DNA from: Macrostomum hystrix
Lineage: Eukaryota > Animalia > Platyhelminthes
DNA length: 64,000 bases
Direction: 5' to 3'
Assembly (NCBI GenBank): GCA_950097015.1
Contig: CATNEN010000003.1
Location: 4,464,001 to 4,528,000 of the forward strand
Both the position numbers and the translations under genes were made by a program. Below the pieces are notes generated by a model. It was not told the origin of the DNA. It did not search any database and saw nothing but the letters and a program-made list of their open reading frames with translations. Below, piece by piece: positions 10,569-36,986 of this stretch. How positions within the stretch are numbered: position 1 is the first letter of the stretch; every line of letters begins with the position of its first letter.

Positions 10569-10679
10569 TACTCAACTACGATTGGCTGCTATTTTTAGAA
10601 TTCAGTTGGGCGAAGGGGCGCAAGTTAAAGCTGAAATTTTTATGACTCCTTTATTGTCGATATCGGCAGGCAACATGGG

Positions 10680-13600
10680 GATAATTGATTCTGATAGGGA
10701 AGGGATAATTGGTTCTGATAGGAAGGGGATAATTGGCTGTGATAGGGAAGGGATAATTGATTCTGATAGGAAGGGATAATTGATTCTGATAGGAAGGGAT
10801 AATTGATTCTGATAGGAAGGGATAATTGATTCTGATAGAAAGGGATAATTGACTGTGACAGGGAAGGGATAATTGACTGATAGGGAGGGGATAACTGACT
10901 ATGATAGGGAAGGGATAACTGACTGTGATAGGGAAGGGATAACTGACTGTGATAGGGAAGGGATAACTGACTATGATAGGGAAGGGATAACTGACTGTGA
11001 TAGGGAAGGGATAACTGACTGTGATAGGGAAGGGATAACTGACTGTGATAGGGAAGGGATAACTGACTGTGATAGGGAAGGGATAACTGACTGTGATAGG
11101 GAATGGATAACTGACTGTGATAGGGAAGGGATAACTGACTGTGATAGGGAAGGGATAACTGACTGTGATAGGGAGGGGATAACTGACTGTGATAGGGAAG
11201 GATAACTGACTGTGATAGGGAAGGGATAACTGACTGTGATAGGGAAGGGATAACTGACTGTGATAGGGAAGGGATAACTGACTGTGATAGGGAGGGGATA
11301 ACTGACTGTGATAGGGAAGGATAACTGACTGTGATAGGGAAGGGATAACTGACTGTGATAGGGAAGGGATAACTGACTGTGATAGGGAAGGGATAACTGA
11401 CTGTGATAGGGAAGGATAACTGACTGTGATAGGGAAGGGATAACTGACTGTGATAGGGAAGGGATAACTGACTGTGATAGGGAAGGGATAACTGACTGTG
11501 ATAGGGAAGGGATAACTGACTGTGATAGGGAAGGGATAACTGACTGTGATAGGGAAGGGATAACTGACTGTGATAGGGAATGGATAACTGACTGTGATAG
11601 GGAAGGGATAACTGACTGTGATAGGGAAGGGATAACTGACTGTGATAGGGAGGGGATAACTGACTGTGATAGGGAAGGATAACTGACTGTGATAGGGAAG
11701 GGATAACTGACTGTGATAGGGAAGGGATAACTGACTGTGATAGGGAAGGGATAACTGACTGTGATAGGGAGGGGATAACTGACTGTGATAGGGAAGGATA
11801 ACTGACTGTGATAGGGAAGGGATAACTGACTGTGATAGGGAAGGGATAACTGACTGTGATAGGGAAGGGATAACTGACTGTGATAGGGAAGGATAACTGA
11901 CTGTGATAGGGAAGGATAACTGACTGTGATAGGGAAGGGATAACTGACTGTGATAGGGAAGGGATAACTGACTGTGATAGGGAAGGGATAACTGACTGTG
12001 ATAGGGAAGGATAACTGACTGTGATAGGGAAGGGATAACTGACTGTGATAGGGAAGGGATAACTGACTGTGATAGGGAAGGGATAACTGACTGTGATAGG
12101 GAAGGGATAACTGACTGTGATAGGGAATGGATAACTGACTGTGATAGGGAAGGGATAACTGACTGTGATAGGGAAGGGATAACTGACTGTGATAGGGAGG
12201 GGATAACTGACTGTGATAGGGAAGGATAACTGACTGTGATAGGGAAGGGATAACTGACTGTGATAGGGAAGGGATAACTGACTGTGATAGGGAAGGGATA
12301 ACTGACTGTGATAGGGAGGGGATAACTGACTGTGATAGGGAAGGATAACTGACTGTGATAGGGAAGGGATAACTGACTGTGATAGGGAAGGGATAACTGA
12401 CTGTGATAGGGAAGGGATAACTGACTGTGATAGGGAAGGGATAACTGACTGTGATAGGGAAGGGATAACTGACTGTGATAGGGAAGGATAACTGACTGTG
12501 ATAGGGAATGGATAACTGACTGTGATAGGGAATGGATAACTGACTGTGATAGGGAAGGGATAACTGACTGTGATAGGGAAGGGATAACTGACTGTGATAG
12601 GGAGGGGATAACTGACTGTGATAGGGAAGGATAACTGACTGTGATAGGGAAGGGATAACTGACTGTGATAGGGAAGGGATAACTGACTGTGATAGGGAAG
12701 GGATAACTGACTGTGATAGGGAGGGGATAACTGACTGTGATAGGGAAGGGATAACTGACTGTGATAGGGAAGGGATAACTGACTGTGATTGGGAGGGGAT
12801 AACTGACTGTGATAGGGAAGGATAACTGACTGTGATAGGGAAGGGATAACTGACTGTGATAGGGAAGGGATAACTGACTGTGATAGGGAAGGGATAACTG
12901 ACTGTGATAGGGAAGGATAACTGACTGTGATAGGGAAGGGATAACTGACTGTGATAGGGAAGGGATAACTGACTGTGATAGGGAAGGGATAACTGACTGT
13001 GATAGGGAGGGGATAACTGACTGTGATAGGGAAGGATAACTGACTGTGATAGGGAAGGGATAACTGACTGTGATAGGGAAGGGATAACTGACTGTGATAG
13101 GGAAGGGATAACTGACTGTGATAGGGAAGGATAACTGACTGTGATAGGGAAGGGATAACTGACTGTGATAGGGAAGGGATAACTGACTGTGATAGGGAAG
13201 GGATAACTGACTGTGATAGGGAAGGGATAACTGACTGTGATAGGGAAGGGATAACTGACTGTGATAGGGAAGGGATAACTGACTGTGATAGGGAATGGAT
13301 AACTGACTGTGATAGGGAAGGGATAACTGACTGTGATAGGGAAGGGATAACTGACTGTGATAGGGAGGGGATAACTGACTGTGATAGGGAAGGATAACTG
13401 ACTGTGATAGGGAAGGGATAACTGACTGTGATAGGGAAGGGATAACTGACTGTGATAGGGAAGGGATAACTGACTGTGATAGGGAGGGGATAACTGACTG
13501 TGATAGGGAAGGATAACTGACTGTGATAGGGAAGGGATAACTGACTGTGATAGGGAAGGGATAACTGACTGTGATAGGGAAGGGATAACTGACTGTGATA

Positions 13601-14257
13601 GGGAAGGGATAACTGACTGTGATAGGGAAGGGATAACTGACTGTGATAGGGAAGGATAACTGACTGTGATAGGGAATGGATAACTGACTGTGATAGGGAA
13701 TGGATAACTGACTGTGATAGGGAAGGGATAACTGACTGTGATAGGGAAGGGATAACTGACTGTGATAGGGAGGGGATAACTGACTGTGATAGGGAAGGAT
13801 AACTGACTGTGATAGGGAAGGGATAACTGACTGTGATAGGGAAGGGATAACTGACTGTGATAGGGAAGGGATAACTGACTGTGATAGGGAGGGGATAACT
13901 GACTGTGATAGGGAAGGGATAACTGACTGTGATAGGGAAGGGATAACTGACTGTGATAGGGAAGGGATAACTGACTGTGATAGGGAAGGGATAACTGACT
14001 GTGATAGGGAAGGGATAACTGACTGTGATAGGGAAGGATAACTGACTGTGATAGGGAAGGATAACTGACTGTGATAGGGAAGGGATAACTGACTGTGATA
14101 GGGAAGGGATAACTGACTGTGATAGGGAAGGGATAACTGACTGTGATAGGGAAGGATAACTGACTGTGATAGGGAAGGGATAACTGACTGTGATAGGGAA
14201 GGGATAACTGACTGTGATAGGGAAGGGATAACTGACTGTGATAGGGAAGGGATAACT
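10680..14257. repeat. 24-bp minisatellite (gataactgactgtgatagggaagg), about 150 copies, filling the KTI12-ASB spacer
   Basis: Tandem 24/23-bp units, degenerate at the left end. Confidence 0.98.
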
Positions 14258-14446
14258 ATACTCAGACAGAACGGATGGGAATAAAAACTGACAGTTGATA
14301 CAGTAGTGAAGAAGCTAACAATGATCAACGTGAAATAGATAATGCGTATTTTGTATATTCTGTCTAATGAAAACATCTTAAATCGAAGGTCCATTCGCAG
14401 GTCACTCGCACGGCCTGTTACAAGAATTGTAAAATAATAACTATTT

Positions 14447-15304
14447 TTACAGCGCACTATTGAGATATTCAACAAACAATTCAGTCATTGCGGCAGCATC
14501 AGTTGCCGAGGCCGCGGTTGCTGGTCTCGAACGGAGGCCTGTTAAAAATTGTTTCCTACACCGCTGCAATTCTCCCATGGTTACCTGCCGATTGAATATT
14601 AACGGACGTTTGCAACCGCTAATGATTAGTTTATCACCGGGCAGTGCTCCAGTTTGAGCGGTGATATATTCTTGCATCACCTGCCTAGTTGCCGAGTCCA
14701 GATTCGGTAGGAAGTCTTGACTAGCAGAGGGTCTAGATTGAGTAGACTGATTGGGTCGATCCGGTGCTCGATCGAACAGCGATGAGCACACCCGATCGCA
14801 CATTAATAATTCGGCATTGGGAGCCAGTATTAGCGGAGAATCCCATCGATTAGCTGAATTTGGCGCCTCAAATTGTGAGCACAATTGATTCAGTAATTCG
14901 TACGGATATTGATCAGATGGTGGCCTACATGAGTTCCAATTTCTGGCTGTCTCTGGCGATACATCGCAATGAATAACACAGAGAGTGTGACGCAGGTGCT
15001 TCACAGAGCAATACAGCTCATAGCGGTAGCCTTTGATGTAATTCAACGAGTCCAAGATGACTACATCGCTTGGAGAAGCAGCTAGTCGACGTTCGGCCTC
15101 TGATTTTAAACATGCTCTGGCCTCCTTTTCCACCGATGAATTGGCGTAGATTGAGCCCTTGTCACCGTTGGCAAGGCCGACACAGATTGAGTCGTCTATA
15201 ATGCTGACACGACGATCGGGATGCTCAGCGGCTAGATAGGCTACTAGCTGCTTGGCTCGGGTTGACTTGCCCGAAGCTGGCAGACCGCAGATTAGTACAA
15301 GAGG
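14447..15304 (-). CDS. KTI12: KTI12 (Elongator-associated P-loop protein); single exon lacking a genomic ATG
   Basis: PLVLICGLPASGKST P-loop, VILDSLNYIKGYRYELYC, FEAPNSANRWDSPL, PNQST, ELQRCRKQF, LFVEYLN. The exon starts at acceptor ...tcacaatccAG|CCTCTT. Confidence 0.93.
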   Translation of the reverse strand, partial: PLVLICGLPASGKSTRAKQLVAYLAAEHPDRRVSIIDDSICVGLANGDKGSIYANSSVEKEARACLKSEAERRLAASPSDVVILDSLNYIKGYRYELYCSVKHLRHTLCVIHCDVSPETARNWNSCRPPSDQYPYELLNQLCSQFEAPNSANRWDSPLILAPNAELLMCDRVCSSLFDRAPDRPNQSTQSRPSASQDFLPNLDSATRQVMQEYITAQTGALPGDKLIISGCKRPLIFNRQVTMGELQRCRKQFLTGLRSRPATAASATDAAAMTELFVEYLNSAL

Positions 15305-15329
15305 CTGGATTGTGATAAAGATAAAAAAT

Positions 15330-15560
15330 TTACATATTATTAATTTCAATTTACAGCACCTGACACATTGGACCAGACGTGCAGCAGCGCATCTGAAGGC
15401 TGCGTACGGCTGTTCAGTCCATGGACTGGGGAGACGCCACACCCCCACCCTCAATGACCCCAGCTGATGCTGGTACCCATTTAACAGCTGGGTGAACTGA
15501 AGCAATGCAGAGTTAAGTACCTTGTTAAAGTGGAGTCGGGAATCGAACCCCGACCTTCAA
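15330..15560 (-). mobile_element. tRNA-derived SINE with a CORE-like domain (family A), 5'-degraded
   Basis: Reverse complement carries B-box ggttcgattcc and ttgcttcagttcacccagctgttaaatgggtaccagcatcag, shared with 25915-26060 and 58650-58830. Confidence 0.7.
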
Positions 15561-16584
15561 GGAAACAAGGCTACTCATGGCACACTATGTTTTGGTACAA
15601 TGTGGAATGTACAAGTTTAATGGACTAGGGGCATGGCATCTATGACATACTTAAAATGCCAAAATGCTCCCAAATGCTCAAAAGAAAGCTGTTTTATAAG
15701 AAAAATTTACAATAGAAAATTTTTTAAAATATAAAATAAGAAAAACTAGGGTAACATTCTCAGCGCATTCTTGGAAAACATTTGTGAATGCAGTGTAATA
15801 TATTTATTTTCATATACAAGTGTAATTTGAAATGCATATAATTTGAAGTAAATAAAATGGTTAAAATTTATACAATGAACTAGTTTATACCGCATTATTA
15901 TATTGATAATAGCCTAGATAGCAGTTAAAATAGTTTATTAAGCATATCAATATGCACTACTTTATTATATAACTTTACGAAAATGTAAATTAGTTACACA
16001 AATGGCCTGAAAATGCATATACGAGTAATATAATAATTTTGACAATAATAACCATATAGTCAATTGGCACAGGGCATTGTATATACAGCTAAAAATAGAA
16101 ATCGATTTTAGGGCTAACGGAGAATTTAACAGTAGAACTACCAATGGGGGGGGTAAATCCCCCCTGACAATTTTTCGTGCAACACACGAACGGAGCAACG
16201 CAAGCACACGAAACTTCTGAAATAATAATCAAGTCGCCAGCTAAGCCCAGCTTTTCAGACCGTCGAGATATTCAATCGGCCGAAGGTCAGATATTTCCCC
16301 TAAGCGCTAGTGTATTTCATGCACCCCTAAACACGAATTAGCACTGCGCCCCAGTGCGGCCTTGCCAGGCCTTCAAAATTGATCAGCGTGTCACCCGAAT
16401 GTGCCTGCATCATCTCCGTCTTCGGTGGTCACCTACCTTCATCTTGACGGATTTGCTGGGCTTTTAAGGGCTACAACAGGTGGAAAAATTGCCACTATGG
16501 ACACCCTGACGCGAATTTCTCTAATTTCACTGCTTAAGCGAAAATACGAGACGCAGCTCCACCCCAGTACAACATCGTCTAGTC

Positions 16585-17043
16585 CAGCGGTAGGCAAACT
16601 TATTTGCTGGCGGGCCAAAGAGAGAACCTAAAAGACGACAGCGGGCCGCATTAACTGTATAAATATGAGATAGGGGAGAGATGAGACACGGGAGAGATGA
16701 GACACAGGAAAGATGGGACACGAGAGAGATGAGACACGGGAGAGATCATGATCTGCAGACACGGGAGAAATTAGACAAGGGAGAAATTAGACACGGGAGA
16801 AATTAGACACGGGAGAGATCAGACACAGGAAAGATGGGACACGAGAGAGATGAGACACGGGAGAAATTAGACACGGGAGAGGTCAGACACGGGAGAAATT
16901 AGATACGAGAGCGATGAGACACGGGAGAGATTAGACACGAGAGAGATGAAACAGGACACTGTAGATGTCAGAAGGGGCAACGGGCCGGATTGGGAGCTTC
17001 GAGGGCCGCATCTGGCCCGCGGGCCGGAGTTTGCCGACCCCTG
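16585..17043. mobile_element. Non-autonomous hAT (Charlie-like) MITE with an internal about 17-bp minisatellite
   Basis: TIRs CAGCGGTAGGCAAACT / CAGGGGTCGGCAAACT (14 of 16 match); perfect 8-bp TSD GTCTAGTC at 16577-16584 and 17044-17051. Confidence 0.9.
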
Positions 17044-17425: not shown

Positions 17426-20400
17426 TCATTCAAAGAAAAAGCGAGACTTTTTCCTTGGCGGCGATGAGATAGGATTGGTGACAGCTTTAGAAGGCTGCTG
17501 CTGCTGTTGCGGTTGATGATTGACAGTTAAATTTGATTTTGGTTTCCGACCACAACCAATCGATAGTCTTTTGCTCATAGACGAATCGGTATTAATTTTC
17601 TTAACCTGACTGTCAATGACTGAAGCCACTGAAGTCTCCTTGCTAAATGAGATCTCAGTTGGAGCTGTGTCAACTTCGCGAATTTTCGATTTTCTATCTC
17701 GCCGTTTCTTCTCACCGTCCGGCACAGAGGAATTCGAAATAGCCAATGGCGTCGCTGCAGCTGATGGCGACTTTGCGGCGATTGGGTCTGAAGTTAGAGT
17801 GCCATTAGGTAAACTAAATTTTTAATAAAAAAAACTCTGCAAAATCTCACCCCCAGAGATAACGACACTGTACAAAATCTCACCCCAAGAGATAGCGACA
17901 CTGTTCAAAATCTCACCCCAAGAGATAACGACACTGTTCAAAATCTCACCCCAAGAGATAACGACACTGTTCAAAATCTCACCCCAAGAGATAGCGACAC
18001 TGTTCAAAATCTCACCCCAAGAGATAGCGACACTTTTAAAAATCTCACCCCAAGAGATAACGACACTGTTCAAAATCTCACCCCAAGAGATAGCGACACT
18101 GTTCAAAATCTCACCCCCAGAGATAACGACACTGTTCAAAATCTCACCCCAAGAGATAACGACACTGTTCAAAATCTCACCCCAAGAGATAGCGACTGTT
18201 CAAAATCTCACCCCAAGAGATAGCGACTGTTCGAAATCTCACCCCAAGAGATAACGACACTGTTCAAAATCTCACCCCAAGAGATAGCGACTGTTCAAAA
18301 TCTCACCCCAAGAGATAACGACACTATTCAAAATCTCACCCCAAGAGATAACGACACTGTTCAAAATCTCACCCCAAGAGATAGCGACTGTTCAAAATCT
18401 CACCCCAAAAGATAGGACTGTTCAAAATCTCACCCCAAGAGATAGCGACTGTTCAAAATCTCACCCCAAGAGATAACGACACTGTTCAAAATCTCACCCC
18501 AAGAGATAGCGACTGTTCGAAATCTCACCCCAAGAGATAGCGACTGTACAAAATCTCACCCCAAGAGATAGCGACACTGTTCAAAATCTCACCCCAAGAG
18601 ATAACGACACTGTTCAAAATCTCACCCCAAGAGATAACGACACTGTTCAAAATCTCACCCCAAGAGATAGCGACACTGTTCAAAATCTCACCCCAAGAGA
18701 TAGCGACACTTTTAAAAATCTCACCCCAAGAGATAACGACACCGTTCAAAATCTCACCCCAAGAGATAGCGACACTGTTCAAAATCTCACCCCCAGAGAT
18801 AACGACACTGTTCAAAATCTCACCCCAAGAGATAACGACACTGTTCAAAATCTCACCCCAAGAGATAGCGACTGTTCAAAATCTCACCCCAAGAGATAGC
18901 GACTGTTCGAAATCTCACCCCAAGAGATAACGACACTGTTCAAAATCTCACCCCAAGAGATAACGACACTATTCAAAATCTCACCCCAAGAGATAACGAC
19001 ACTGTTCAAAATCTCACCCCAAGAGATAGCGACTGTTCAAAATCTCACCCCAAAAGATAGGACTGTTCAAAATCTCACCCCAAGAGATAGCGACTGTTCA
19101 AAATCTCACCCCAAGAGGTAGCGACTGTTCGAAATCTCACCCCAAGAGATAGCGACACTGTTCAAAATCTCACCCCAAGAGATAGCGACTGTTCAAAATC
19201 TGACCCAAGAGATAGCGACACTGAACAAAAAAACTCGAAAATATCACCTTTGTTCTCATTGTTAACGACAGTGTCGCAACTTTTCAAATCGACGTCAACC
19301 TGCCCAGACATGACGGCTTCGTAATCCAACTCAACTGGACCTGCAGCACTAGCTGCGGTATCTGTTGCTGCAGATTTCTTCTTTCTCTCCTTTTTCGCTG
19401 TTACAGAGGCCAGTCGGTTTTCAGTGCCTTTCTCGCAGTCTTTGTTATCACTCTGGACACGATCAGGGGGGCTGTTAAGCGGCTCCTCTTCCGGCTTGTA
19501 ATCGGTGCGAAAATTGTACACCGCAGACTCGGCGGCGCCCTCTTCCCAAGGCGCCGGCGCCTGATCCGGGATGCGTTTGAAAGCGAATTTGTACACACCG
19601 AAGCCTGCCATACCGGTGGCGTACCACCACTTCTCCACGCGATAGAGTCCGTCGTATCTGGGTGAATCGGGCGGATTAACGATGGGAGAGGAGATATGAT
19701 GATTTTATAGAAAAATTATCAACTAAAAAGTGAACGTGCGATTTTTTTATTGGATAAAATAGAGAATGTGAGATTCTATGGGATAATTTTTAAGTCGATG
19801 GGATTCTGTGGGATAATTTTTAAGTAGAAGAGATTCTATTAGATAATTTTAAAGTAGATGGGATTCTGTAGGATAATTTTAAAGTAATTAGGATTCTGTG
19901 GGATAATTTTTAAGTAGTAGAGATTCTATAGGATAATTATAAAGTAGATGTGATTCTTTGGGATAATTTTAAAGTAATTGGGATTCTGTGGGATAATTTT
20001 TAAGTCGATGGGATTTTGTGGGATAATTTTTAAGTAGAAGAGATTCTATTGGATAATTTTAAAGTAGATGGGATTCTGTGGGATAATTTTAAAGTAATTA
20101 GGATTCTGTGGGATAATTTTTAAGTAGAAGAGATTCTATGGGATAATTTTTAAGTAGAAGAGATTCTATGGGATAATTTTTAAGTAGATAGGATTCTGTG
20201 GGATAATTGTAAAGCAGATGAGATACTATGGGATAATTGTAAAGGAGATGGGATTCTATGGGATAATTGTAAAGTAGATGGGATTCTATGGGATGATTGT
20301 AAAGTAGATGAGATTCTATGGGATAATTTTAAAGTAGATGGGATTCTGTGGGATAATTTTAAAGTAGATGGGATTCTGTGGGATAATTTTAAAGTAGATG

Positions 20401-23400
20401 GGATTCTGTGGGATAATTTTTAAATAGATGAGATTCTATGGGATAATTTTAAAGTAGATGAGATACTATAGGATAATTTCGAGATGAGATTCAATAGGAT
20501 AATTTCAAGAAGATGAGATTCTATAGGAATTCTAGGGAGAAATTATTCAAGATAGGATTATATGGGATTAGTTTTAAGATTGGATCCAAGGAGAAAATTG
20601 ATTCTATGGGATTCTACGAGCATATGGGAAAAGTTAAAACATGGGACTCTAGGAAATATAAAATGGGATTCTATATTGTATTTTTAAGTAGACAAGTTTC
20701 TATGCGAGGATAAAATATTTGGGATAACTTTATAAGACAATAATCAAATGGGAAATCTAATTAGCTCACCTATAATAGCCCTCAGGTGGTGCGAATTCGC
20801 TCTTCAGCTTGTAGCCCCGAATGACTCGCACCGGTTGGCCATTCTCAGCCGATTTAACTAGAGCCGCATTATTCCTAGTCAAAGCCTGATCCTTAGTCTG
20901 CGGAGCTGTTCTCAGATTCTTCGGATTCGATTTGGTGCCTTTCAAATCGCGCCCGCCCTCGCCAGTGTAGGAGAAATGGCTGCCGAGATCGATGTCGTCC
21001 TCATAGCCGCCAGACAATGCGATGGAATAGGCGCCCTCTGTGCCGCCGTGAATTCCGGCCACTGTCGGCCTATGCAAACCGGCTAGGCAGGCGTCGATTC
21101 GAGTCTCAAACAGGGTGCCGACTGCCACGTTGGGCATTGCGCCATAGACATTTGGGCGATTTTTGGCAACCTTGGGACGATCGAATACGCTGCTACCGGA
21201 TAAGGCTGCGCCAGAACGACTGCGGCGGCCGATGCGACCTGGGGAATAATGGGCACACGATTGCTAGGATCCTATTATATAATCCCAACCTTTTCTCTGC
21301 TCGATGTCGATTTTATACTCAAATTTCTGATCTCACTTTGCATTATTAAATCTTAGATCCCATTATTGATTTGTACGCTTATAACAAATAACGTTTGTTT
21401 ATTTCTTTATTTTCTTTATCCTGCTTGATTTATCAGTACCTGGATATTTAGGGATTCCATAACCAAATTGGGATGTTTTATCCCATATCCCAAAAACTGC
21501 ATTAGAAAACATTTTTTCTCGTACGTAAGTTGTACCGTAGAAAACTTCTATTCCCCATCCTATAAGTTGCGTACGATATTTGCGTACGATATTTGTATCC
21601 TACATTCAATAACTCTATTCGAAAAATCCCATTCTAAAGAGTCCTATTCTAGAGAATCCCATTGTAGAGAATCCCATTCTAGAGAATCCTATTCTAGAGA
21701 ATCCCATTCTAGAGAATCCTATTCTAGAGAATCCAATTCTAGAGAACCCCATTCTAGAGAATCCCATTCTAGAGAGTCCTATTCTAGAGAATCCCATTCT
21801 AGAGAATCCTATTCTAGAGAATCCCATTCTAGAGAACCCCATTCTAGAGAATCCCATTCTAGAGAGTCCTATTCTAGAGAATCCTATTCTAGAGAATCCT
21901 ATTCTAGAGAATCCCATTCTAGAGAATCCCATTCTAGAGAATCCCATTCTAGAGAATCCTATTCTAGAGAATCCTATTCTAGAGAATCCCATTCTAGAGA
22001 ATCCCATTCTAGAGAATCCCATTCTAGAGAATCCCATTGTAGAGAATCCCATTCTAGAGAATCCTATTCTAGAGAATCCCATTCTAGAGAACCCCATTCT
22101 AGAGAATCCCATTCTAGAGAGTCCTATTCTAGAGAATCCTATTCTAGAGAATCCTATTCTAGAGAATCCCATTCTAGAGAATCCCATTCTAGAGAATCCC
22201 ATTCTAGAGAATCCAATTCTAGAGAATCCTATTCTAGAGAATCCCATTCTAGAGAATCCCATTCTAGAGAATCCCATTCTAGAGAATCCTATTCTAGAGA
22301 ATCCCATTCTAGAGAATCCTATTCTAGAGAATCCCATTCTAGAGAATCCTATTCTAGAGAATCCAATTCTAGAGAATCCTATTCTAGAGAATCCAATTCT
22401 AGAGAATCCTATTCTAGAGAATCCCATTCTAAAGAGTCCTATTCTAGAGAATCCCATTCTAGAGAATCCTATTCTAGAGAATCCAATTCTAGAGAATCCT
22501 ATTCTAGAGAATCCCATTCTAAAGAGTCCTATTCTAGAGAATCCCATTCTAGAGAATCCTATTCTAGAGAATCCCATTCTAAAGAGTCCTATTCTAGAGA
22601 ATCCCGTTCTAAAGAGTCCTATTCTAGAGAATCCCATTCTAAAGAGTCCTATTCTAGAGAATCCCATTCTAAAGAGTCCTATTCTAGAGAATCCAATTCT
22701 AGAGAATCCTATTCTAGAGAATCCCATTCTAAAGAGTCCTATTCTAGAGAATCCCATTCTAGAGAATCCCATTCTAAAGAGTCCTATTCTAGAGAATCCC
22801 ATTCTAAAGAGTCCTATTCTAGAGAATCCCATTCTAGAGAATCCTATTCTAGAGAATCCCATTCTAGAGAATCCCATTCTAGAGAATCCTATTCTAGAGA
22901 ATCCCATTCTAGAGAATCCCATTCTAGAGAATCCTATTCTAGAGAATCCTATTCTAGAGAATCCCATTCTAGAGAATCCCATTCTAGAGAATCCTATTCT
23001 AGAGAATCCTATTCTAGAGAATCCTATTTTAGAGAATCCCATTCTAGAGATTCTAAATCTAAAGCCCTTTCCCACTACAGTTCAAATGGGAATTAACTAT
23101 GCGACTATCACAAAGGTGATACTGCATTATTGCCTATAACTAATATTCCCTGAGTTTGTTGTTTTAAATTTAACTTAATAAGATATGAGAATTGGTAAAT
23201 TTCTGACGACTTAATCCGCGTCCAGCTCGCCGGAGGGAGCACAAAGTGCTAGTTTATTATTCCACATTTCATAACTCCATTGATATAAATTACCCTATAT
23301 TCCGGAGTAACTTTACCTGTAACAAAAAGCAAATATGCCTCGTCATCTAATCAGAAACTCCCTTTCTCACCTTCTCCTTCGCTGTCCGAATCTTCGCTCT

Positions 23401-23866
23401 GATAATCTTCGTCGGAATCTTCACCATCATCGTCTTCGCCGCCTCGCCGTCGACCTCGCCGGCCGCCAGACGGTGTCCAGTTCTCCTCGCCGCTGTCGTC
23501 CTTTCCGTAGCCGTCGCATTGTCCAGCGTAGCGCGGCGCCGGCCGGCCCTCCAAGCGTCGACTAGATCGACGCGACATTGCCTCCTCGTCGGCAGCGGCT
23601 AATCGACGCGCCAAAACGGCGTCCGCATCGTCGTCGCCATCGTCGATTTTGCCGTTCTTAGAATCAACGCCAGTTTTCTCAGACGTTTTATATATTTTCT
23701 TAGTCGATAATGGCGCTAAAGATCGCCGTTTCGACGACGCCAAAGGCGGGGCGGACAATTTCCTGGCCGACTGTGGCGGAGCCGCTATGGCGCCCAGTTC
23801 GCCGAGGATTCGCCGATTTTCGGCGAGATTTTTTAAACGCCGCTGTTCGTAACCGCTTAGCGACAT
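17426..23866 (-). CDS. Stand-alone SRA/YDG-domain protein; exons 23866-23371, 21238-20770, 19657-19248, 17787-17426 (about 578 aa)
   Basis: YGAMPNVAVGT..AGLHRPTVAGIHG..AYSIALSGGYEDDID..YTGEGGRD..PVRVIRG..GYYR|YDGLYRVEKWW is an SRA domain. No UBL, Tudor, PHD or RING domain is seen. The last-exon acceptor is less certain. Confidence 0.88.
17840..19222. repeat. 33/31-bp minisatellite (aaaatctcaccccaagagatagcgacactgttc) in SRA intron 3, with an about 676-bp higher-order repeat
   Basis: Tandem copies; the variant order recurs with a 676-bp offset. Confidence 0.95.
19765..20480. repeat. 30-bp minisatellite (ggattctgtgggataattttaaagtagatg) in SRA intron 2
   Basis: Tandem copies with substitutions. 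Confidence 0.93.
21620..23052. repeat. 15-bp quasi-palindromic minisatellite (attctagagaatccc/t) in SRA intron 1
   Basis: About 95 tandem copies. Confidence 0.97.
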
Positions 23867-24039
23867 TGCAGACTGCTCAGCTGCAAAGGTTGGGTTGGAT
23901 TCGATTTTGATTCTTAGAATAATACGCACGTTGGCCTGTATAATAGCCTGTCAAAAATATGTAAATTAACCTGTAAATTAAACTATATTAACTTGTAAAT
24001 TAGACTGGCATTACCTCTACAACTAATCACTTACTTGTA

Positions 24040-25140
24040 GTTGAGCCAGTCATTAGCATGTAGTTTAGTCTGTCATTAACCTGTAGTTTAGTCTGTCATT
24101 AACCTGTAGTTTAGTCTGTCATTAACCTGTAGTTTAGTCTGTCATTAACCTGTAGTTTAGTCTGTCATTAACCTGTAGTTTAGTCTGTCATTAACCTGTA
24201 GTTTAGTCTGTCATTAACCTGTAGTTTAGTCTGTCATTAATCTGTAGATTAGTCTGTCATTAACCTGTAGTTTAGTCTGTCATTAACCTGTAGTTTAGTC
24301 TGTCATTAACCTGTAGATTAGTCTGTCATTAACCTGTAGTTTAGTCTGTCATTAACCTGTAGATTAGCCTGTCATTAACCTGTAGTTTAGCCAGTCATTA
24401 GCATGTAGTTTAGTCTCTCATTAACCTGTAGATTAGCTTGCTATTAACCTGAAGATTAGCCTGTCATTAACATGTAGTTTAGTCTGTCATTAACCTGAAG
24501 TGTAGCCAGCTATTAGCATGTAGTTTAGCCAGTCATTAGCATGTAGTTTAGCCAGCCATTAGCATGTAGTTTAGCCTGTCATTAACCTGTAGTTTAGCCA
24601 GCCATTAGCATGTAGTTTAGACTGTCATTAACCTGTAGTTTAGCCAGCCATTAGCATGTAGTTTAGCCAGTCATTAGCATGTAGTTTAGTCTGTCATTAA
24701 CCTGTAGATTAGTCTGTCATTAACCTGTAGATTAGTCTGTCATTAACCTGTAGTTTAGTCTCTCATTAACCTGTAGATTAGCCTGCTATTAACCTGTAGT
24801 TTAGTCTGTCATTAACCTGAAGTGTAGCCAGCTATTAGCATGTAGTTTAGCCAGTCATTAGCATGTAGTTTAGCCTGTCATTAGCATGTAGTTTAGCCAG
24901 TCATTAGCATGTAGTTTAGCCTGTCATTAACCTGTAGTTTAGCCAGTCATTAGCATGTAGTTTAGCCAGTCATTAGCATGTAGTTTAGCCAGTCATTAGC
25001 ATGTAGTTTAGCCAGTCATTAGCATGTAGTTTAGCCAGTCATTAACCTGTAGTTTAGCCAGTCATTAGCATGTAGTTTAGCCTGTCATTAACCTGTAGTT
25101 TAGCCAGTCATTAAGCTGTAAAATAGCCTATCATTAACTT
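24040..25140. repeat. 23-bp minisatellite (tgtagtttagtctgtcattaacc / tgtagtttagccagtcattagca), intergenic
   Basis: Two interleaved unit variants. Confidence 0.95.
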
Positions 25141-25693
25141 GAAGATTCTGAAGATAATCTTGCTCTAAATAAGTGAAAAAAACTGTAAATAAACACAATA
25201 TCGACACGAAAACAGTAGAATTTACTTCATAATTTTGCCAAATAATTTAATGATGTTCACATAAAAAACTTTAGAACAAAAAACTTCGCAACATTGAAAA
25301 ATAGAACTTAAAACAAATCCTGGATATGAAGTACATACTCTGTTTTTAAACATGAAACATGACCTATTGGTACAAAGACTTTCTGCAAACTACAGGGACC
25401 CATAGTGCCTATAAAATATTTGAAAGCAACATCAAGTGCCTTTTAACTGAGACAAAATTGTTTCAAAATAAATTGTTGTTTTACAAAAATGTATTATGGA
25501 AAGTAAATATTACCAGTCAAATTTTCATATTTTCAAGCTCTGAATTATAATAGATACGAGTATAATGATTTATTAGATTTTTTCATTTCTGTATATTTCT
25601 TTATTTCTAACGAATTATAAAATTCAGAAATTACTAAAATTGAAAATGATATTAGTAATTCTAATTCTAATTGCTGGCATCCCATTACAAAGA

Positions 25694-26448
25694 CTATTTT
25701 TGGTCAACGAATCCCATAACGCTATCCAAAAATTTGGCGAATATCTCTGGTTCGCCGCGCGGAAACGGTTTCAGATGCCCGGCTGGAGTCAGGTTGCGCA
25801 GGGCGTCCTCTAAGTCAGCGCACACAGCCGTGTCCAGGTGGCCGTCTCTGCAAGACGAGAAACAACTTTGGACTGACCAACTTGGTTTGCTGTTACATTT
25901 ATCCATCTAGACATGAGGACTTGTAGCCTAGTGGTTAGAGTGTGCGACTAAACACTTTAAGGTCGGAGGTTCGATTCTTAATTTGTGCCCTTTAGCAAGA
26001 CACTTAACAATGCATTGCTTCAGTTCATGGATTAAATGGGTACCAGCATCAGTTGACGTCGGTCATGATTTTACCTGGCAACTCGCTGAGCAAGCTCAGT
26101 CTGGTGATTATGCATCAGGTCGTCATTGACAACAACTAGCAATCGTTTGCCAGCGTTCAACGATTCCAGGACGCTGCCAGCCCCGGCGTGGCTGATGACT
26201 AAACCGGCTGCGGCCACATCAGCGGCTAGTGACGGCTTGAAGCGATAATAGCTGACTGAAAAACGGCCCTCCAAAGGGTAATCTCTGGCCGTGTGAGCCG
26301 TGGGTTCGTATTCGCCACGCCCAATCTGCATAACTAGGCCGTGATAGCCCAGCTGATCGCACAGGATCTTATGCAATTCGACCGAATCTAGGCGCCGAAT
26401 CAGCGAATCGAATGATGTTGTGCCAACTGTTACAAATACGTTAGGCAT
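25694..26448 (-). CDS. ALG13: UDP-GlcNAc transferase subunit ALG13 (short form); exons 26448-26075, 25847-25694 (175 aa)
   Basis: VFVTVGTTSFDSLI, MQIGRG, YYRFKPSL, LVISHAGAGSVLE, VVVNDDLMHNHQTELA, GEPEIFAKFLD. Confidence 0.95.
25915..26060 (+). mobile_element. tRNA-derived CORE-like SINE (family A) in the ALG13 intron
   Basis: A-box tagcctagtggtt, B-box ggttcgattc, then gtgccctttagcaagacacttaac...aaatgggtaccagc. Confidence 0.75.
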
Positions 26449-26699
26449 TGCTTCGCCCTGTTGGATAGCTGTTTAAAGATTTTCCTCGCGAGTTAACGAG
26501 GCCCGACTGAATGTTAATGCGAACTGAAATGAGCGAATAAAACTGGGAAATAATTTTGGGATATAAAAAGTTGCTGAATAAGAGGGCTTTAGAATGATGG
26601 CTATTCAATTAAAATATATTCCGAAAATATATTTCGGGATGTAAAAATTGTGTGAATATGATTAGGGATAATAATTTGGGATAATAATTGCGTGCATAT

Positions 26700-27100
26700 T
26701 GAAAAAAGGATTATAAAATGGGATCTTAGAAGGCAAGATTGATAGTGGGATTCTTAATTAGGAGAATAATAGTGTAATCTAAAATTGGGAGAATAACAGT
26801 GGGGCGTTGAAACTGGGAAGAATAATAGTGGGATCTTAGAAATTAGGGGAATAATAGTGGGGATCCTAAAAATGGCATTAAAAGCGGGATCTAAAATTGG
26901 GAGAATAACCGCGGGATCTTTAATTAAGGAGAATAACAGTGGGGATGTTTAGAATGGGAAAATAATAGTTCGTGCTTGAAATGAGAGAATACGTTTAGAG
27001 ATCTTAAAATTAGAATTATATTATTAAGGATCTAGAAGTGGTAGAACAATTTCTAAGATCTAAGAATTGGGAAAATTAAGAGGGGGTCTTAAAATAAAAA
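26700..27100. repeat. Highly degenerate about 30-bp tandem repeat (aaattgggagaataatagtgggatct), intergenic
   Basis: Recurring gagaataa(t/c)agtggg motif. Confidence 0.6.
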
Positions 27101-27181
27101 ATGTATAGGGATTTCGCAACTTAAATAAAAACATTCACAGCTACTAACCGAACTATATGAAATGACGGTCAAGGAACGCTT

Positions 27182-27487
27182 CTAATAGATTTCAGAATAC
27201 TTCTTTCCGCGAAATCGATTTCGCATATCCAGCTGCTCGCGCCGGCAGATGAACAGGCTGTACCTCACTGAGCGGCACTCCTCGGACACGTCGGCTTTGG
27301 GGTCGCGCAGGCAGTCCAAAGGTGTGCGACGATCGCGCTTAACGCAGTCTGACAACAGCAGACACAGGCGGAGCTCCTCTTTCAGTTGCGTGCAAGCCTT
27401 CCTTGGGCCACTGCTTGCTGCCTTATCAACGCTGTGACTAGCAGTACTATTGTTAGTAGTATCGGCTGTGTTACTAGTTGATGTCAT
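27182..27487 (-). CDS. COA5: Cytochrome c oxidase assembly factor 5 (Pet191), single exon, 101 aa
   Basis: ACTQLKEELRLCLLLSDCV..TPLDCL..EECRSVRYSLFICRREQLDMRNRFRG, the twin-Cx9C-type Pet191 pattern. Confidence 0.92.
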   Translation of the reverse strand: MTSTSNTADTTNNSTASHSVDKAASSGPRKACTQLKEELRLCLLLSDCVKRDRRTPLDCLRDPKADVSEECRSVRYSLFICRREQLDMRNRFRGKKYSEIY

Positions 27488-36000: not shown

Positions 36001-36541
36001 AAAAACAGAACATGGTTTTGTACCTTGGCACGCCAAAGCAGTAGCTATCCGACAGTTGCCAACCAAAAGGGCATTGGCCAGCTGAAACAAACTGAACGTC
36101 CAGCAATAGGGTAGCAACACCGGCATCGATTTCGGCAAAAATGGCAACAAAGAAAGTGCGACGTTGAAACTCAGTAGCAAACTGGCGATAGATCATGCCA
36201 GATACACTGGAATCCCATAATAGGCTGCCAATGGCGGACGATTCGCGTAGTATTGCTCTGCTACCAGTAATCAGGTTTGTACTAGGCAGAATTGTCACGA
36301 CAATGTAGCCATCAGCTGGTTGGCTAGCACCTGCGCTAAATACAAGGCTACAGTTAGATTTTAGTGCGCCAGTAAAGTTAAATGTCAAATTTAATGTAGC
36401 ATTGTTGCTAAGCAACTCAATCGAAGCGGGGATTCTTGTGTGGATTGTGCCAGCACTGCATGAAACTGTTTGGCCATAGATGCTAGTTGCAGCTATTATT
36501 GCTAGCAAAAGTAAAGCAGTAACCAGGCTCTTGTCAGGAGC
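33088..36541 (-). CDS. Type I membrane protein with a C-type-lectin-like domain; exons 36541-36024, 35530-35312, 33643-33088; no genomic ATG
   Basis: Signal peptide APDKSLVTALLLLAIIAATSIYG; lectin-like domain CPFGWQLSDSYCF..FESAITGC..YWIGAK..CACL..DCSDQLGYLC; TM segment WLGISLLIIVAIIFASIIF; two phase-2 introns join in frame. Confidence 0.8.
33727..34035 (+). mobile_element. SINE family B copy with an internal deletion
   Basis: Same head and body, (ATT)n tail. Confidence 0.85.
34340..34965. repeat. 23-bp G-tract minisatellite (ctactggggggattagttctctg) in lectin intron 2
   Basis: Tandem copies with G6-G7 runs. Confidence 0.97.
35675..35978 (+). mobile_element. SINE family B copy in lectin intron 1
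   Basis: tggcagagtggtc...gagctcgagtcc head and the shared body. Confidence 0.82.
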
Positions 36542-36986
36542 CTGCACAAATAATATCTTAAAGCTGTTGGGTGGCTGCAATGAATTTTTTCTCAATGTGT
36601 AAGTAGAAAATTTTGCATCCTAAATGTTTGACAAATTAGCTCATTTACTTCAAAAAACTTTGTTTTTATTTAAAGAATATATGAATAGCACTTCATATTG
36701 AATATAGTATACTGTGGCGGAGAGTGCACTCTACCCCAGACAGCCGGCCCCAGACATCACACCACGGTCTGGGCGGATGCGTCACCCCTGCTCGCGCGGT
36801 CGCATTGGTTTGCGATCCTCAGTGGGGTTGGGGACATGGAGAAGTCGCGCTGGCCTTTATAAGGCTCTTTGTCTCGGGCACAGAGCCCTCACCCCTTTTT
36901 GCGAACTCAAATAAACACGAACTCGTTTGCGAAGCCAACTCGGCAACCCGCTACATTGGTGAGCCCGACGCAGCCATTTCGTTCCA

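Follow-up and report, generated by a model that had tools for sequence, protein, structure and literature searches.

The KTI12 gene of the flatworm Macrostomum hystrix has no start codon in the genome, and it is very probable that the missing codon is supplied by the spliced leader (SL) through trans-splicing at the AG on positions 15306-15305. The gene lies on the minus strand of a 64,000 nt stretch of DNA (contig 3, 4464001-4528000), hereafter called the window, and positions given without a contig are those of the window. Genome searches covered 220,453,370 bases on 42 contigs. The features of the locus, where X5 and X6 are the two sequencing runs whose contigs reach the acceptor, are as follows.

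14276-14446, minus strand: 3' UTR (X5 contig to 14276, X6 contig to 14313)
14447-15304, minus strand: coding sequence of KTI12 in one exon of 285 codons, which opens with codon 2 (CCT, Pro), lacks an ATG in the genome and closes with the stop codon TAG at 14449-14447
15305-15306, minus strand: AG splice acceptor and putative SL trans-splice site, seen in the sequence and as the point (15305) where the X5 and X6 contigs part from the genome
15307-15328, minus strand: T-rich tract ahead of the acceptor (ttttttatctttatcacaatcc), seen in the sequence
15384-15561, no strand assigned: interspersed SINE-like repeat in the presumed outron, with a B-box-like GGTTCGATTCCCG on the minus strand, found from its genome copies
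16051-16055, minus strand: candidate micro-exon end ATG/gt, rejected

The KTI12 frame and its upstream sequence

Read on the minus strand, the sequence around the start of the frame is ...aattttttatctttatcacaatccAG/CCT CTT GTA CTA ATC TGC GGT CTG CCA GCT TCG GGC AAG TCA, where the slash, here and below, marks an exon boundary; positions 15305-15306 are AG, and codon CCT begins at 15304, directly after it. Translation of 14450-15304 gives 285 amino acids free of stops, and the product matches the Pfam family PF08433 (KTI12) with an E-value of 1.6e-74 and 251.3 bits against a cut-off of 22. The alignment pairs protein residues 1-282 with profile positions 2-271 of 271, and since it begins at profile position 2, only the initiator Met is absent. 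Structure matches were found to KTI12 of Chaetomium (PDB 6qp0) and to archaeal PSTK, with the N-terminal Walker A P-loop that follows the first beta-strand, PLVLICGLPASGKST, aligned with PLIVVTGLPSSGKTT of 6qp0 and with the P-loop of PSTK. When the product was searched against a large protein collection 590 homologues were obtained, the named ones being mostly KTI12. In 110 of 121 homologues the 'PL..' before the P-loop is immediately preceded by Met, and among these 121 such a Met is missing only in two orthologues from Macrostomum lignano. By these similarities the gene encodes KTI12, the Elongator-associated P-loop ATPase related to PSTK, with presumed ATPase, tRNA-binding and Elongator roles.

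KTI12 is single-copy in M. hystrix, no second copy or retrocopy having been found in the searched genome. Nor did the large collection hold an identical or near-identical KTI12 protein from the same species; the closest protein is BOX15_Mlig019088g2 of M. lignano, with 74% identity. Both M. lignano orthologues, BOX15_Mlig019088g1 and g2 (PAA54849.1 and PAA82840.1), are recorded as 'partial' and begin PLVLLCGLPSSGKS at the same Pro, so that, compared through their protein records, they share the ATG-less start of the M. hystrix gene. Gene models that start at codon 2 are what is expected after trimming of the SL from the reads, whereas an ATG exon farther upstream would give a different picture.

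Upstream of CCT there are 84 further open codons, up to a stop at about 15557-15559, and no in-frame ATG was found among them, while TTG, GTG and CTG codons occur. This open frame extends into the repeat at 15384-15561, for which a first look at the genome gave more than 1,300 candidates; the 40 that were scored are 84-95% identical over query positions 40-217. Contig depth over the repeat reaches thousands, coming from other copies. Within the KTI12 protein Met does not occur until residue 168, well beyond the P-loop GLPASGKS. All of this agrees with the initial annotation, which had described a frame with no genomic start codon and CCT directly behind AG, an ATG-free upstream frame and a first internal Met far past the P-loop, and had noted that one added ATG restores the conserved N-terminus. 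It had further let the upstream frame run into a SINE; an interspersed repeat is indeed present, but ARAGORN did not find a tRNA in it, and the label SINE is reasonable yet unproven.

The surroundings of the gene are rich in tandem arrays, which flank KTI12 at 10651-14257, 16665-16953, 17840-19230 and 19772-20200 with periods of 24, 16, 33 and 30 nt, respectively. The 24-nt array starts about 190 nt beyond the KTI12 stop codon, near the end of the 3' UTR in the contigs (14276). Conserved genes on the minus strand lie upstream of KTI12 (17426-27487), namely a SAD/SRA-domain gene at 20766-21137, an ALG13-like gene with a Glyco_tran_28_C domain at 26071-26448 and PET191 at 27182-27487. The nearest upstream ORF on the same strand is about 2.1 kb from KTI12, the gap consisting largely of repeats, and an operon-like arrangement of KTI12 with the upstream same-strand genes is possible. 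At another place in the window (36470-36560, minus strand) an AG stands directly before GCT CCT GAC AAG AGC CTG GTT ACT GCT TTA CTT TTG CTA..., and the frame there reads APDKSLVTALLLLAIIAATSIYG, which by eye resembles the start of a signal peptide without its Met, and which a leader AUG would complete.

Transcript contigs and the spliced leader

Contigs of the runs X5 and X6, which belong to four runs of one 2020 study, and of the runs X1 and X2 from another study were aligned to positions 14262-16660 (2,399 letters), a stretch clear of the flanking tandem repeats. The four runs of the 2020 study contain 95-98% of the sampled words of the stretch. Although these runs carry no RNA record, the X5 and X6 contigs look transcript-derived, as judged by the coverage pattern together with a contig total of about 43 million letters for a genome of 220 Mb. 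X1 and X2, which come from other organisms or samples, gave short contigs within the coding region only, none of them reaching the 5' end.

Two contigs end at the acceptor. Record 17 of X5 has a length of 1,052 nt; letters 1-1030 match 14276-15305 with 0 mismatches, after which 22 letters, known by number only, continue beyond 15305. Record 25 of X6 has 1,024 nt, of which letters 24-1016 match 14313-15305, also with 0 mismatches; this leaves 23 letters at the 5' end of the mRNA, again known by number only, and 8 further unlike letters at the 3' end, past 14313. The depth in the bin 15302-15381 is 1.9 and 1.56, which is exactly 4/80 of the contig depth, and coverage thus stops at 15305. No contig covers 15306-15386 and the depth at the unique intergenic positions 15622-15941 is zero, which means that the mature RNA lacks the DNA upstream of the acceptor. 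Among the joints listed, which include those with sides of only 20-23 letters, none leads from 15305 to anywhere in 15306-16660 (1.35 kb).

Farther upstream, positions 16005-16236 are covered by mismatch-free contigs at a depth of about 5.6, compared with 31-38 for KTI12, in a region otherwise without unique coverage. These contigs may stem from an outron or promoter-proximal piece of the KTI12 pre-mRNA, or from an unrelated transcript.

A leader ending in ...ATG predicts a match boundary at 15305 and not at 15304, because the last G of the leader coincides with the G of the genome at 15305 and agreement is lost at the following letter; the genome match of both contigs ends at 15305. We infer that the 22-23 non-genomic letters are the 3' end of the SL. 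The length of the unlike part can be compared with an expectation, on the assumption that the Logan contigs are built from 31-letter words (k=31 de Bruijn): a contig would keep no more than 30-p letters of the shared leader, where p is the length of the longest prefix that the mRNA has in common with another trans-spliced mRNA. Taking the number of trans-spliced genes in M. hystrix as about 7,254, p is 6 or 7 with a combined probability of about 0.72, which gives 24 or 23 letters, and counting the common G the observed numbers are 24 (X6) and 23 (X5). The KTI12 acceptor ATCCAG agrees at five of six positions with the trans-splice acceptor motif of M. lignano, [T/C]TNCAG (PMC8629364). The context of the leader AUG is weak, with T at -3.

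The genome also contains the genes from which such a leader can be made. Of the 35-nt Macrostomum SL, quoted for M. lignano in PMC8629364, at least 23 exact copies are present in the M. hystrix genome, and 19 loci are intact SL RNA genes that read ...GACTCAATTTATTGCATG/GTAAGACACCG, followed by the Sm-like ATTTTTAG and a terminal hairpin. The leader in these genes ends ...TTGCATG/GTAAG, with ATG directly before the GT donor, in line with the expectation of the initial annotation that flatworm leaders end in AUG. The M. hystrix SL has been given as 43 nt with ATG at its end (Table S3, PMC10468722), and the eight extra 5' letters of this longer form are likewise found upstream of the genomic copies. 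The genomic leader is the same as the published SLs of M. hystrix and M. lignano, and has no ATG elsewhere along its length. No SL RNA gene was found within the 64-kb window. On contigs C15, C17 and C42 the canonical SL RNA genes recur in arrays about every 11.6-11.7 kb, which suggests that a larger tandem unit contains them.

Several further sequences related to the leader were seen in the genome. A single SL is reported for Macrostomum in the literature covered, whereas a tandem array with a period of 927 bp (L010, C39:12667884-12685526 and beyond) holds at least 20 copies of a second SL-RNA-like gene. Its leader, CGGTCTCTTACTGCGAAGACTCTCTTTTTTGCATG, is followed by GTAAGACACCG, the Sm-like ATTTTTGA and a terminal hairpin of its own, and close to its 3' end it departs from the canonical leader in several letters, although it, too, ends in ATG. 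At three loci (L002, L003 and L004, at C3:9792961, C7:8561392 and C7:9274918) the full leader, including the 5' extension GCCGTAAAGA, is fused to unrelated sequence without the GTAAG intron, and from their sequence these look like retroposed copies of trans-spliced mRNAs. Finally, a dispersed repeat at L011, L012 and at least 15 other places (e.g. C1:10196334 and C8:3485170) carries a diverged leader (...TTACGGCGAAGGCTCAATTTATTGCATA) joined to GCGAAGTGATTATTG..., and it appears from this structure that the founder RNA of the family carried a spliced leader.

Taken together we propose the following course of events for KTI12. The pre-mRNA would begin upstream, with an outron that takes in at least the SINE-like repeat. 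The SL RNA would then give its leader at AG 15306-15305, with removal of the outron, and the leader of about 43 nt with its AUG end would yield a mature mRNA of about 1.07 kb that reads ...UUGCAUG/CCU CUU GUA. The predicted junction is ...CAATTTATTGCATG/CCTCTTGTACTAATC, in which CAATTTATTGCATG is the 3' end of the SL and CCTCTTGTA the exon side. In such an mRNA the leader AUG would come first, with no other before the open frame, and its reading frame would be that of KTI12; ribosomes would presumably initiate there, and translation would give MPLVLICGLPASGKS..., the canonical KTI12 N-terminus, with (M)PLVLICGLPASGK as the expected start of the protein.

Other possible sources of the start codon

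If KTI12 were an ordinary two-exon gene, its start codon could come from a cis-spliced upstream exon ending ...ATG or in G, placed more than 1.35 kb away or joined by an unusual donor. Genes with a phase-0 intron straight after the ATG exist, and a distant 5' exon ending in G would produce the same match boundary at 15305, just as a short first exon would also yield 22-23 unlike contig letters. Such an exon would, however, have to be only about 24 nt long, as the contigs end 23-24 nt past the junction, and why both stop there would be left unexplained. The lack of any listed joint into 15306-16660 speaks against it, as do the two M. lignano gene models, which begin exactly at codon 2 and have no upstream exon. 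In the 12 kb upstream the minus strand holds only two ATG/GT sites, neither of them with the GT[G/A]AG donor of the M. lignano motif. One is ATG/gttatt at 16051-16055, which the initial annotation had named as a weak micro-exon candidate near 16050; record 29 of X6 (16005-16173) crosses it unspliced and no joint connects it to 15304/15305, and it was discarded. The other, at 23427, falls inside the ORF 23351-23929 of another gene. We regard a cis-spliced first exon as improbable.

Still less likely is initiation without any added exon, either at a non-AUG codon of the upstream frame in an unspliced transcript or at the internal Met168, which would give a different or a truncated protein. The 84 open codons upstream of CCT would leave room for the former, but that frame is repeat sequence, and no contig covers 15306-15386, the mature RNA being without that stretch; a start at Met168 would cost the protein its P-loop and the greater part of the kinase-like domain, and against either position stands the fact that the homologues begin MPL. 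Where a gene has no start codon the suspicion always arises that the ATG is missing through an assembly error or that the locus is a decaying pseudogene; nothing specific speaks for it here, and we consider it the most remote of these explanations. Against it stand independent contigs of two runs, which follow the genome as far as the acceptor with 0 mismatches, two other runs that contain 95-96% of the sampled words of the stretch, the 285 intact codons, the full-length Pfam match, the status of the gene as the sole KTI12 in the genome and the ATG-less state of two M. lignano genes. Delivery of the start codon by trans-splicing of the SL, as the initial annotation had reasoned, is on the other hand supported by four independent lines, namely the contig boundary at 15305, the SL RNA genes, the partial M. 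lignano models and the lack of a usable ATG/GT site.

Implications and comparison with known systems

The use of the SL AUG for initiation has been known in flatworms since 2006, and KTI12 in two Macrostomum species is a well-supported new example of it rather than a new principle. With trans-splicing as the source of its start codon, an essential gene for a tRNA-modification cofactor would be untranslatable from the genomic sequence alone, which makes KTI12 a clean and conserved case in a free-living model flatworm genus. The case lends a further, incremental argument to the view that flatworm leaders retain their invariant AUG because certain genes depend on it. More tentatively, and with somewhat less than an even chance of being right, we suggest that KTI12 has depended wholly on the leader AUG since before the split of M. 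hystrix and M. lignano, and that it belongs to a larger group of conserved Macrostomum housekeeping genes whose own start codons have been lost. If this is true, trans-splicing would be an obligatory on-switch for the translation of such genes, and a gene set of this kind would hold the terminal AUG of the SL in place by selection. For the annotation of Macrostomum genomes it means that such genes are called 'partial' or missed unless the leader ATG is added, as the M. lignano records illustrate.

The supplement of the M. hystrix genome paper (PMC10468722) mentions the SL AUG as an initiator, for which reason the ATG was purposely left on the reads; KTI12 is absent from the supplements of that paper. 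Among the papers searched, none names Mlig019088 or the KTI12 case, and none gives the trans-splicing status of the M. lignano orthologues.

In Schistosoma, Cheng, Cohen, Ndegwa and Davis (J Biol Chem 2006), as far as summarised in PMC9851317, found the SL AUG in frame in 28% of trans-spliced transcripts, and more than 40 schistosome cDNAs are there said to require the SL AUG for correct initiation (see also PMC12582326). The SL-AUG mRNAs of Schistosoma mansoni resemble KTI12 in that the SL ends in AUG, the acceptor stands directly before codon 2, no start codon is present in the genome and an in-frame SL AUG restores the N-terminus. They differ in that the S. mansoni cases consist of cDNAs and translation assays, whereas KTI12 is another gene, from another flatworm order, the free-living Macrostomorpha, for which we infer the junction and the start. 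With cis-spliced genes whose first exon ends in ATG, KTI12 has the AG before codon 2 in common, but unlike in those genes the 12 kb upstream show no such exon and no contig joint leads to one. A leader that provides the start codon is likewise known from the slORFs of nematodes, Oikopleura and trypanosomes (slORFfinder, PMC9851317); most of these are new or alternative frames, often begun at near-cognate codons, whereas in KTI12 the frame opened by the leader would be the sole canonical frame of a conserved housekeeping gene.
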